DNA of 63,665 nucleotides, the filler included, from Choristocarpus tenellus KU-1152 (taxonomy: Eukaryota > Protista > Phaeophyceae), in the NCBI GenBank assembly GCA_964200185.2. It is 8 parts of 8 records of this genome, joined end to end, with 100 filler letters (N's around TTAATTAATTAA, not from the genome) between each part and the next. Parts side by side here need not be neighbours in the genome. Positions count along the whole stretch, not along the records: positions 42,536 to 47,942 come from CAXNAD020010882.1; 7 more parts are not named here. The stretch is one strand, 5' to 3'. Made by a program: the position numbers and the translations under genes. Position 1 is the first letter of the stretch. Every line of letters begins with the position of its first letter. Shown piece after piece: positions 42,436 to 47,942 of the stretch. The notes under the pieces are model-generated. The model did not search any database, was not told the DNA's origin, and saw nothing but the letters and a program-made list of their open reading frames with translations.

Positions 42436-42563
42436 NNNNNNNNNNNNNNNNNNNNNNNNNNNNNNNNNNNNNNNNNNNNTTAATTAATTAANNNNNNNNN
42501 NNNNNNNNNNNNNNNNNNNNNNNNNNNNNNNNNNNATTCACATCCACACAACAAACGCAATGT

Positions 42564-42821
42564 GAGTGAAAGTATCTTAGAGGGTACAAGTTTTGCCCTG
42601 TTTGTCCATTTGGGGCTTGGATCCCACAGGGTTTTTTATGACACTTTCCTACTCCAAAACGTTTAGGAGTAGGTAAAATGTATACGTTATGAAAAGGTGT
42701 GTCAGAAACATGGATATTGACACTTCCTAAGAAACACGATAGCCAAAATTACATCAAAATCACAACATTGGATTTTGACCCTCAAATGGACGCCGCTCTA
42801 CCCTCTAAGAAAATTTATTTC
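42564..42821 (-). mobile_element. MITE family A copy 5 inserted in the LRR array intron
   Basis: TIRs present. TSD TGT is confirmed by the empty paralogous site CAATGTCAC at ~43469. Confidence 0.93.
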
Positions 42822-42994
42822 TGTCACATGCATCACATACCAGTCAGTATCATCGAAATATCTTCTTCCATGGAACATCAAATCAGACATTTGAACAATA
42901 CAGCTACAAATCACACAAAAAATGGATTACATCACATGCTTACAAACGACATTGTGAAATCATCAGCCTTCCATGTGCAAACGAGCAAACATAC

Positions 42995-43068
42995 CACTTA
43001 GTTTTTTTTGTTGTGGAGATCGAGAACAAAGATGTTGGAGAGTTCAACTAGAGATGATGGTATGTCTC
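42995..43068 (-). pseudogene. LRR exon (74 nt, +2 frameshift in a poly-A run)
   Basis: CAG|GDIPSSLVELSNIFVLDLHN(KK)..|GTATGT. Eight Ts replace the 6 nt of sister exons; this may be a homopolymer error. Confidence 0.75.
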
Positions 43069-43644
43069 CTGTTTGGGAAGAAATCCAATTCACACACAGT
43101 CCACACACAGGAAGCATGGTCAGTCTACATTCAACCACATAATCGTACATAATATGAACAAGAACAACGTACATCACTAACAATTAACAACAAACCACCT
43201 ACACCACTTCACATCAATGCACGTCACCTGTGTGAAACATTGATAGTTTATAGAAACAGAAGATATACAACGACCAACGATGTACTGTTCCAGGTATAGG
43301 ACTCATATTCTCTCTTGTAGTCCTTATCATCAAACATGTATCCCATCACTACACATTCTATTCAGCTCGCCATTCTACCCTTCATAACAACGTACACAAC
43401 ATAAACAAAATATACTAGACAGCGCTACATACCTTAACAACTCACCATTGACATCCACACAACAAACACAATGTCACACGTGTTAAAGACCAGCCAATAT
43501 AATCGAAATGTGTTCTTCTATAGAACATCAACTCACACATTTGAACAGTACAGCTAAGAATCACACAACAAAGAAAGTGCGTCACATGCTTACGAACGGT
43601 AATGCGAAAGCATCAACCACCCATGTACAAACGAGCAAACATAC

Positions 43645-43716
43645 CACTTAGTTCATTGTTGCTGAGATGGAGATTTTCGAGGTTGGAGAGTCCATCTAGA
43701 GATGATGGTACGCCCG
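43645..43716 (-). CDS. 72-nt LRR exon
   Basis: CAG| xGVPSSLDGLSNLENLHLSNNELS(G) |GTATGT, phase 1-1. Confidence 0.9.
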
Positions 43717-44296
43717 CTGTTTGGGAAAAAATACATGTCACACACAGTTCATACATAGGAAGTATGGTTAGCTTTGCATTGAACCTCAGGATCATATAAA
43801 AAACGAAGAACAATGCACATCACTAACAATTCACAACCAGTCACCTACACCCCTTCAAATCAATGCACGTCACCTGTGTGAGAACATACATTAATAGGTG
43901 ATAGAAAAATGATACATTTTACGACCAATATTGTACTGTTCAGGCTATAAGACTCATCTACCCCCTTCTAGTCCTTAACATTAAAACATGTATCTCAACA
44001 GTACACGTCCCATTCGCCAAAACGGTATCTTCGCTCTTCCACACTACACGACAAACACACGCAACATCAAAATATACTAGATAACACTACATACCTCAAT
44101 AACCCACTATTGACAACCACACAACAAACTCGATGTCACATGTACCATGGACCAGTCAACATCATCGGCATGTCTTCTACGGAACATCAAATCATAACAG
44201 TACAGCTACAAGTCACACAACAAATGGAGTACATCACATGCTTACAAATATCAATGTGAAAGCATCAACCTTCCATGTACAAACAAGCAAACACAC

Positions 44297-44368
44297 CACT
44301 CAGTTTATTGTTGCTGAGATCGAGAACAAGGAGGTTGGAGAGTCCACCTAGAGATGATGGTACGTCCC
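44297..44368 (-). CDS. 72-nt LRR exon
   Basis: CAG| GDVPSSLGGLSNLLVLDLSNNKLS(G) |GTGTGT, phase 1-1. Missed by the ORF track. Confidence 0.9.
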
Positions 44369-44963
44369 CTGGTTTGAAAGATTTTCATGTCACACACAGT
44401 TGACACAGAGGAAGTATGGTTAGCTTTGCAGTAAAAAACCATAACCATACAATAATACACAAAATGAACATGAACAACGCGCATCACTAACAATTCACAA
44501 GAAACCGCTTACACCACTTCACATCCATGCACGTCACCTGTGTGTGAACATATATTGATAGTTTACAGAAAAATGAGAAATTAAACGACCAATATAATGT
44601 ACAGTTCAAGCTACACGACATATCTACTCTTCTAGTCCTTAACGTCAAAACATGCATCTCAACAGTGCACACCCAATTCACCAAAAATGTATCTTCGCTC
44701 TTCTATCTACACAATAATAATGCACATCGAAAATACTAGACAGTGCTACATACCTCAACAAACCCACCATTTACGTCCACACAAACACAATGTTACATGT
44801 TTCAGAGACCAGTCAATATAATCGAAATATCTTCTTCTACGGAACATCAAATCACAAATTTGAACAGTACAGCGACAAATTACACAACAAAGGGAGTACG
44901 TCGCATGCTTGCAAACAGTAACATGAAAGCTTCAACTTCCCATGTACAAACAGGCAAACATAC

Positions 44964-45035
44964 CATTTAGTCTATTGTTACTGAAATCGAGATATTCCAG
45001 CTTGGAGAGCCCACCTAGAGATGATAGTATGCCTC
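44964..45035 (-). CDS. 72-nt LRR exon
   Basis: CAG| GGILSSLGGLSKLEYLDFSNNRLN(G) |GTATGT, phase 1-1. Confidence 0.9.
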
Positions 45036-46839
45036 CTGTTCGAGACGAAATACACGTCAAACATAGTTCACACAAAAGAAGTATGGATAGCTTTGCAGTC
45101 AACCACACAATCATATACAAAATGAACAAGAACAATGCACATCACTAACAATTATTCACTAGAAACAACCTACACCGCTTCACATCAATGCAATCACATG
45201 TGGGACCATATAGATTGGAGTACTTTTTAAACAGAAGGAGATTTTTACTCTCTTGTAGTCCTTAATTCCTACCTGCACTGTTTGGAAAGAAATATAAGAC
45301 ACACGATTTTAAAAATGGAAATTAAGGTACACAATATGCTATAATTTTATATCGCGAACTATTCGCAACCAATTTCCTCTACCGATTTTGTTAGATTTGT
45401 ATGGCATGGATGATTATGCATATTAGTAATACACAAAATAAACAGCGACGAAATTTGCAGCAACTGAGTTCAGAAATGCGACCATACTTATCTACTCTCT
45501 TGTGGTACTCAATAACAAAAACATACATCTCAGCGTCAATCAGGTAATTGAGCAAGAAATTTATTTTCTCCACATGACGAGACAAAACACGTCAAAATCC
45601 ACGATTCACTAGACAGCTCTAAATATTTGAACCTAATCTAGATATCAATTCAAGAAATATTATATGACATCTATCACAGACTAGTCAATAACAACGAAAT
45701 GTCTCGCTCCATCAAAATATCGAAGGGTCAGTCAATTGCCATGTATAGGACTGTCACAGAGTCATCATTGTATAAAAAAAGTACCAAATATTTAAATTGG
45801 GTGCAACTTGTCTTGAGTAAGATTCGATTGTGGGATAATATATTTGATTTGGTTTGTACACAAGCAATTAAGACATGAACCTAGTCGCAATTACACATTG
45901 AAAGAGAAGCCTAGTTCATAAATCACATTGGAGCTCAGTCACAGCCTCTACTTTGTATGCATGAAAAATGTGTACACGTCAGTCAGTTGGTTTTAGTTGG
46001 CGAAGGCTTTAGGCGCTGGGGGGAACTTGAAGAGATGCTGTAATCCTTGTTTGAAACAAAATACAGAACTGATGTAGTGTACTGTTGGAAAAATCTAAGG
46101 CCATGAAAAATACAACTTATCACCTTAGTCAAAGTAGACGAGAGCTACTCCGAGTTGCATTTGAAGGGAGCTGACAAAAATGTACATTAATTGGCTTATT
46201 TTACCAATTCGTACAGGTTGTATTCTAAACAGTGTCGAATAGTTTCAGACGATATAGAAAGAACATTCCCAAGCCAACCCTAGAACCCAATCCATAGAAG
46301 CATGGGTGAATTGCGGAAGATTGAAAAACAGACTTCAAATGGAAAATGGCTAAAACCTGAGTACCTCTCGTTACCGTGGTTCTAAAGAGGTCACATGTAA
46401 CCAAGTACGAACACCTATTCCTGTACGCCATAAATGTAAATAAATGCTACAGATTACATGGAAATTATCTGGAAGAAAATGACTTGACTTCTGGAAATAT
46501 AAAGATGCTTGTAGCAGAAGCAATAACGGTCCACCTCTCTTACTTTGTCCACAAGATAGTGTATACCATCAGTCAATAGACTATTAAAAGAAATCTCTGA
46601 AGTGATCCCATCAGAAAAGAAGTTGTATAATATATTTTGAAGTGGATTGTACTGACACCATATCAGGATACCTGCAGTACCAATGAATTCAGATCAGGCA
46701 GAGGTGGGTTGAACTCTGCCCTGATCGGATCTTAGAAGATGTTGGCGCGTGTGCAGCAAGAGGCTTAGCTAATATTTACACTTCACTTACGGTATGAAGC
46801 ATTGTCAAAGCTCGATGCATATATTTCAACACGGGCAAA

Positions 46840-47020
46840 GACCTAGAGTATCTGTGTGTGTGGGGGGGGGGCTACACCAGGGTGTCCATTTGGACCAAAT
46901 TCAGGAAAGGTGCATTTACATTATCCATCGGACGTATGCAACCGAATCAACCAAAAATTGCGACATAAAGAAATTGACCCCAAATGGACAGCCGCCACCC
47001 CCCCCCAGATACATTGAGCC
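46840..47020 (-). mobile_element. MITE family B copy 3 (complete)
   Basis: GACCTAGAGTATCTG ... CAGATACATTGAGCC; TSD AAA. Confidence 0.9.
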
Positions 47021-47219
47021 AAATTTATATTCAATGGAATCCTCCCAAGATTCAGATGATGATACAGAGCCAAACCAATTGAGGGGTAGGCAGGTTTGGA
47101 CCCGTTTGCGTTCTAAATATTATATCCTACTCTATGCAATTCACTACTTCTTTGTTCTTTGTGCACAATAGTGTACGCGATCTACGTGTTACCCCTTTAC
47201 ACTCATTATATATGATTGT

Positions 47220-47478
47220 AAGCCAAAGTATCTTCGAGGGTAGAGCAGTGTCCATTTGGGGGTCAAATTCCAATGTTGTGATTTTGATGTAATTTTGACT
47301 ATCATGTTTGTTAGTAAGTGTCAATATCCTTGTTCCAGACACACCTTTTCATAACATGTACATTATACCTACTCCTAAACATTTTGGAGTAGGAAAATGT
47401 CATTAAAAAAAACGTGCGAAGCCAAGCACTAAAGGGACAAACAGGGCAAAACTCGTACCCTCTAAGATACTTTCACTC
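47220..47478 (+). mobile_element. MITE family A copy 6
   Basis: AAGCCAAAGTATCTTCGAGGGTA ... TACCCTCTAAGATACTTTCACTC; TSD TGT. Confidence 0.92.
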
Positions 47479-47872
47479 TGTACTTTCTCAAGATCCTTCA
47501 AATTCAAGCCTGTCTACCTCACTTGGTTTCACTGACAGCTAAGAAATACACAATAAAGCACACGATGTATCGATAGTTTTCGTATAATCAGGGAATACAT
47601 TCAGTTTTCAACCCGAAAAAATTGTAACACAGTTCACAGATAGTGCAATTCGATCATTCGGAAGGAGTACAAGTACCATCCAAACCCTAGATCAAGCAAT
47701 GACAGCTACGGACTCTGCTTGAGGAATCCAAAGTACATGTTAGCAAATTCTTCAATACCTCATAGAGCAAAGTTTTACACGGGGGAATAGATATAGACGT
47801 GCTGCTGGAAATGGGGCATATGACAAAGCCTATTGCACTACTGTACCTCCACAAATTAATCAAGTTGTACGA

Positions 47873-47942
47873 GGCTCAAAGTATCTGGGGGAGGGTGGCG
47901 AATGTCCATTTGGGGTCAATTTTTTCATGTCGCGATTTTTGG
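47873..47942 (+). mobile_element. MITE family B partial (contig end)
   Basis: GGCTCAAAGTATCTGGGGGAGGGTGGCG... Confidence 0.85.

Follow-up and report, generated by a model that had tools for sequence, protein, structure and literature searches.

The contig CAXNAD020010882.1 occupies positions 42536-47942 of a 63,665-nt window composed of joined parts of the genome assembly GCA_964200185.2 (Choristocarpus tenellus KU-1152); the analysis covered this one 5.4-kb contig, and all positions are given as counted along the window. On its minus strand the contig carries a tandem array of leucine-rich repeat (LRR) exons, each encoding one repeat, which are embedded in units of approximately 650 bp with alignable introns. 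The contig probably covers a portion of the LRR-coding region in a nuclear gene of an intron-rich eukaryote with a GC content of approximately 38%. The array itself is likely to represent a segment of an LRR gene that is truncated by the contig end, consists of type I single-repeat exons, would have originated from an old tandem expansion of exon plus intron, and may still be coding in part. Nothing in the contig shows an active diversification mechanism.

Organization of the array

A repeat finder reported a family of long direct repeats (D1-D16) spaced by 650, 652 and 667 bp; the array, with a period of more than 500, was not detected by Tandem Repeats Finder (TRF). Exons were located by reading the minus strand together with the splice dinucleotides, E1 being read by hand. 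The four LRR exons, named E1 to E4 in their order on the coding strand, start at positions 45035, 44368, 43716 and 43068 (minus), which corresponds to spacings of 667, 652 and 648 bp (Table 1), and all LRR reading frames lie on the minus strand. At least five units are visible, of which three have an intact exon and one a broken exon, while another is exon-less.

Table 1. Positions and properties of the features of the LRR exon array, including the inserted element resembling a miniature inverted-repeat transposable element (MITE)
Feature	Position	Strand	Remarks
Older, more diverged partial unit	45486..45716	-	Unit positions ~180-417; score 93-113 vs shuffles ~32±5
Weak acceptor-region remnant	45270..45328	-	Score 45 vs shuffles 25.7±3.5; low confidence
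3' part of the intron before E1	45036..45265	-	Unit positions ~391-652; 78% over 182 nt
LRR exon E1	44964..45035	-	72 nt, phase 1-1, AG acceptor, GT donor
Intron 1	44369..44963	-	595 nt, GTATGT donor; 81% and 80% identical to other units
LRR exon E2	44297..44368	-	72 nt, phase 1-1; most canonical repeat
Intron 2	43717..44296	-	580 nt, GTGTGT donor; acceptor preceded at ~50 nt by a CTAAC-type motif
LRR exon E3	43645..43716	-	72 nt, phase 1-1, AG acceptor, GT donor
Intron 3	43069..43644	-	576 nt; homologous to introns 1 and 2
LRR exon E4	42995..43068	-	74 nt; frameshift; no Pfam match
Intron-like unit sequence after E4	42536..42994	-	79-83% identical to the others; interrupted by the MITE-like element; contig end; D15 copy at 42536-42563
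MITE-like element	42564..42816		~250 bp, terminal inverted repeats; in the unit intron after E4

At its start each exon has the last two nucleotides of a Gly/Ala codon that is split by the intron, and its final base, a G, opens the next codon; because the split codon contributes two nucleotides at the start and one at the end, the 72-nt exons are symmetric and the introns are in phase 1. The split codon of E3 would give Ala instead of Gly. At the acceptors a pyrimidine-rich stretch terminates in AACAG or ACCAG, the donors read GTATGT or GTGTGT, and at three of the four acceptors direct reading revealed a CTAAC or CTGAC motif approximately 50 nt upstream. In the alignment with the other units E4 contains two extra A's in an A8 run, which cause a frameshift and a TAA stop codon 5 nt before the retained GT donor, so that E4 may have been inactivated, may be a terminal exon or may result from a homopolymer assembly error. 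The frameshift site coincides with the A8 run (43000-43012, minus), and a sequencing or assembly error could explain it.

The initial annotation had described four LRR-exon units of ~650-670 bp, all with symmetric phase 1-1 exons, intact splice sites and a conserved scaffold motif. The observed spacing agrees with this description, but the fourth exon comprises 74 nt and not 72 nt; phase and splice sites were confirmed for E1, E2 and E3, whereas E4 (the exon previously read as FVLDLH) is frameshifted, runs into the TAA and is neither symmetric nor intact. Relative to the motif, the Pro is replaced by Leu in E1, where the Asn of LSNL is likewise replaced by Lys (LSKL). The proposed duplication of whole exon-plus-intron modules is borne out, as the introns can be aligned between units over 560-570 nt at 79-81% identity. 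With regard to the extent of the array, previously placed at 42536-45265, the boundary on the side of the contig end stands, but the exon-less remnant on the other side reaches to approximately 45716.

The contig end at 42536 falls inside unit sequence, 460 nt past E4. At the opposite side of the array, the unit-like part of the intron before E1 is confined to its last 180-230 nt. The weak acceptor-region remnant at 45270..45328 is joined straight to mid-intron sequence, the exon and approximately 380 nt being absent; the unit upstream of E1 is regarded as exon-less because the two abut directly. Neither unit-like sequence nor an LRR motif was found beyond 45716 on either strand within the contig, and a motif scan of the contig yielded neither an LRR cassette on the plus strand nor additional copies in the introns. 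A Pfam search with ten non-array open reading frames (ORFs) of the contig gave no domain, and Rfam gave no match in the contig.

An intronic block, CACACAGGTGACGTGCATTGATGTGAAG (minus strand, unit positions ~480-520), occurs at approximately 43205-43240, 43851-43886, 44515-44550 and 45170-45205. It ranks with the most strongly conserved stretches of the unit and is also retained in the remnant upstream of E1. Within it lie a donor-like site (CAG|GTGA) and an ACGTG core. With a value of ~0.83, the block does not clearly exceed the remaining intron in conservation.

Encoded repeats

Similarity searches were run with single exons. E1, E2 and E3 each matched the Pfam families LRR_8, LRR_4 and LRR_1, with all scores below the curated cutoffs, as is expected for single repeats; E2 matched LRR_8 with an E-value of 1.3e-4. 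The solved structures that best matched the E2 open frame, repeat by repeat, were the ectodomains of the plant LRR receptor kinases (LRR-RKs) GSO1, FLS2, MIK2 and ERL1. On the basis of these Pfam and structure matches the repeat is classified by its sequence as a 24-residue LRR of the plant-specific type.

A HMMER search with the E2 open frame yielded 24,670 matches, the top of which were giant proteins with many LRRs (45-61% identity). Ten sampled matches comprised metagenome proteins, an EIX1-like receptor-like protein (RLP) from Pistacia and a protein from a metagenome-assembled genome of the Spirosomataceae. The matches of E2 are read as generic LRR similarity, with no near-identical family and no lineage signal among them. 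For E3, the surrounding open frame of 66 aa was used in a word-index protein search, which gave no candidates.

Divergence and maintenance of the units

The pairwise identity between units was 72-86% for the exons and 79-83% for the introns. Kimura two-parameter (K2P) distances between introns were 0.226, 0.239 and 0.245 (~0.24), i.e., the units are equidistant, and the longest exact run common to any two units was 26 nt. Because the units are equidistant and exact runs do not exceed 26 nt, the array suggests that the units arose in a single old burst of amplification and that the copies have diverged independently since then. The comparison of K2P distances and exact runs between the units provided no evidence that duplication or gene conversion took place recently; recent or ongoing duplication was rejected as an explanation, the units being ~20% diverged.

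Maintenance of the exons was assessed by a simulation in which the observed number of substitutions was scattered over the consensus exon and the splice dinucleotides. All three exons (E1-E3) remained free of stop codons with AG/GT in 14% of the trials, at most one scaffold break occurred in 11%, and both outcomes coincided in 1.3% (p≈0.013), these p-values being rough, as the consensus derives from three to four copies and a star tree was assumed. No indels are present in E1-E3, compared with 1.9 per 72 nt predicted from the intron rate (P(0)=0.15). Since substitutions spare the scaffold and the splice sites and the exons lack indels, it is more likely, as far as such rough tests go, that E1-E3 have been retained as coding exons competent for splicing, with the non-scaffold positions free to change.

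The most variable codons are 13, 14 and 16 of the 23, all within xxLxLxx. Variation had been reported in the initial annotation as concentrated at the concave face; a trend in this direction is present, with 7/15 variable nucleotides at the x positions of xxLxLxx versus 14/57 elsewhere, but with few copies it is not significant (Fisher p=0.09).

A module of ~650 bp (exon plus an intron of ~580 nt) was amplified in tandem, likely by unequal crossing-over, after which the copies diverged by ~0.24 substitutions/site without further exchange. In later changes the exon of one unit was deleted, a frameshift and stop codon apparently arose in another exon, and a MITE inserted into one intron. If the array is indeed a partly coding gene segment, E1-E3 would still be spliced into an LRR solenoid, in which the hydrophobic core would be formed by the scaffold residues, while the free x positions, those of the concave face among them, would have drifted or diversified. 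Any diversification would then probably be the ordinary germline duplication and divergence of a binding surface, and not a programmed somatic or splicing system.

Comparison with known LRR exon systems

The 'type I LRR exon' of Ectocarpus is a 72-nt exon with the motif GxxPxxLxxxxxLxxLxLxxNxLx; besides ROCO genes, five LRR-kinases and 46 further LRR loci contain it. Shuffling in this alga is regarded as marked by LRR exons, whether intact or inactivated, that lie in introns or on the non-coding strand, together with traceable recent recombination (Zambounis et al. 2012, PMC3341825). In the brown-algal LRR exon, nt 3-71 encode 23 aa, LRR-exon splice variants occur in the ROCO genes, and sites 14, 16, 18 and 19 were found to be positively selected (Teng et al. 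2024, PMC11378527). The array studied here resembles the brown-algal type I arrays (LRR-ROCO, LRR-kinase and LRR-only genes of Ectocarpus and Saccharina) in that E1-E3 contain one LRR per 72-nt exon, share the register G-x-x-P…N-x-L-x with 23 aa in nt 3-71 and a codon split 2+1, are separated by introns of several hundred nucleotides, encode plant-specific-type LRRs and are accompanied by a putatively inactivated exon; among the sites reported as selected, 14 and 16 coincide with variable codons. The earlier comparison with the one-repeat-per-exon arrays of brown algae was thus apt with regard to length, register and phase (PMC3341825, PMC11378527). Unlike the brown-algal arrays, the present one shows no LRR cassettes on the opposite strand and no recent recombination that could be traced, the putatively inactivated E4 being the sole sign of this kind, and unlike in LRR-ROCO genes no ROC-COR or other partner domain is seen in the contig, which stops 460 nt past E4.

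Land-plant LRR receptor-like kinases (LRR-RLKs) also have 72-nt single-repeat exons, and the repeat sequence of the present array is closest to plant LRR-RK and RLP ectodomains. In rice LRR-kinases, however, the 72-nt exons, which are thought to derive from exon duplication, lie between introns in phase 2, which interrupt the first Leu codon of xxLxLxx (PMC3050792), whereas the phase-1 intron in the present array splits the Gly/Ala codon before x-[IV]-P. The land-plant exon type was rejected for the array, as both intron position and phase differ (PMC3050792). From the two motifs we infer that the rice register is equivalent to the offset boundary called 'type II' by Zambounis et al. Owing to the different intron positions and phases, rice-type and array-type exons are not interchangeable.

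Tetrahymena has tiny introns and a very AT-rich genome. Its LRR arrays resemble the present one in that exon-plus-intron modules were amplified (in Tetrahymena by ectopic recombination), the exon length is fixed and the intron phase is uniform, but they consist of 90-bp exons with phase-2 introns (PMC6564038), compared with 72 nt and phase 1 here, and of a different type of repeat. A ciliate 90-bp LRR exon array was rejected on these grounds of exon length and phase (PMC6564038).

With the lamprey VLR and the arthropod Dscam systems the array has the general idea in common that tandem cassettes can give rise to combinatorial binding surfaces. VLR cassettes have no splice sites; somatic copying inserts them into a gene that is incomplete. 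For Dscam arrays, docking and selector RNA elements are required.

Alternative explanations

Ranked second is the unlikely case of a decaying relic, i.e., a fragment of a pseudogene or a remnant, no longer expressed, of a type I LRR exon array under neutral drift, with three exons open by chance. Several observations weigh against a still-coding segment, and most of them speak for such a relic. Among the units U1-U3 the fraction of variable columns is the same in exons (21/72, 29.2%) as in introns (161/550, 29.3%), the differences are flat over the codon positions, and the Nei-Gojobori ratio of non-synonymous to synonymous substitution (dN/dS) is 0.9-2.1, i.e., ~1 or higher, on tiny counts over 23 codons; by these bulk measures the exons evolve like the introns and look neutral. 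E4 is broken by a frameshift and a stop codon, E1 is devoid of the motif Pro (Pro to Leu), the unit upstream of E1 has no exon, and a MITE lies inside the array. No other coding feature was found in the contig, the 2.2 kb upstream of the array containing no further exon or domain. A degenerate exon DNA pattern gave 0 matches in collections of metagenome, prokaryotic-genome and viral contigs, i.e., no homologous locus, and the roughness of the simulated p-values has to be counted on the same side. A relic is opposed by the rarity with which chance alone retained three stop-free, splice-competent exons with at most one scaffold break, by the missing exon indels, and by the expectation that a fully neutral array at ~0.24 substitutions/site should show more damage. 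A non-genic macrosatellite of ~650 bp, which had captured an LRR exon with its intron and continues past the contig end, was considered the least probable of all explanations. The units are arranged head to tail, the contig breaks inside the array, and the surroundings are repeat-rich (four MITE-like copies in 5.4 kb); satellites, however, are usually homogenised, whereas the units here are ~80% identical and equidistant, and splice sites and LRR scaffold are kept better than by chance.

The initial annotation had proposed a candidate immune-like diversification system based on the shuffling of repeats. Combinatorial use of the cassettes by exon skipping, mutually exclusive splicing or ongoing or somatic recombination, which would provide an immune-like receptor with variable ligand-binding surfaces, is improbable. 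In principle the intact cassettes can be added, lost or skipped without loss of the frame, as had been proposed, since E1-E3 are symmetric (phase 1-1, 72 nt) and any subset keeps the frame; the position of the most variable codons within xxLxLxx and the splice variants and selected sites of brown-algal ROCO genes with the same exon type (PMC11378527) point in the same direction. The equidistant units (K2P ~0.24) with exact runs of at most 26 nt, however, bear no mark of such activity, reverse-strand or extra intronic cassettes are absent from the contig, the concave-face excess is not significant, and somatic recombination was not observed even in brown algae (PMC11378527). Active shuffling or immune-like diversification accordingly found no support, the units being old and equidistant and one cassette being broken. 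A variant in which a low-GC eukaryote outside the brown algae makes selective use of symmetric type I cassettes, by regulated exon skipping or exon choice, and thereby varies a receptor binding surface, is more doubtful still.

MITE-like elements and base composition

The ~250-bp element at 42564-42816 looks MITE-like by its terminal inverted repeats. Its insertion site is uninterrupted in the other units, and a second copy of ~250 bp is located at 47225-47478 in opposite orientation, with 84-89% complementarity to the first. Both elements have terminal inverted repeats that start with AAAGTATCTTAGAGGGTA and include GTCCATTTGGGG; no clear target-site duplication was definable for either of the two. 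Shorter relatives at 46845-47020 and 47873-47942 have the terminal motif GTATCT…G-run…TGTCCATTTGG in common, which brings the number of MITE-like copies in the 5.4 kb to four; the former looks like a complete element of ~175 bp with inverted ends, the latter is cut by the contig end. One of the MITE-like elements is crossed by a 125-aa ORF (46794-47171) without a Pfam match, which is probably spurious. When an ORF that crosses the multicopy MITE served as query, the word-index protein search found nothing. Regarding the MITE terminal motif, 25 matches to metagenome contigs were rejected as chance hits, as blastn showed no similarity beyond the 18-mer.

The GC content varies along the contig between 35% and 43% (overall ~38%), with a marked strand skew; the composition of the minus (coding) strand is A 25%, C 14%, G 24% and T 37%, i.e., T/G-rich, and GC at third codon positions (GC3) is ~43%. 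The genomes of Ectocarpus and Saccharina have a GC content well above that of the analysed contig (38%, GC3 ~43%), and sequenced brown algae in general exceed its 35-43%; on this basis a source outside the brown algae was considered possible. Stop codons are rare on the coding strand because it is T/G-rich and A-poor. Stop-free frames of 66-69 codons that run from intron through exon into intron are located at 43613-43819 and 44935-45141 (minus); they are not real ORFs, yet prokaryote-style gene callers would call them.

Implications

The architecture of one repeat per exon is already described in brown algae, and the array is of a known kind. As a caution, a symmetric cassette array alone is no sign of active shuffling. 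If selective cassette use outside the brown algae were true, a brown-alga-like cassette system would extend to another lineage. Should the source lie outside the brown algae, the type I cassette with one LRR per exon would be more widespread than reported, which would make a modest point on the growth of LRR domains.

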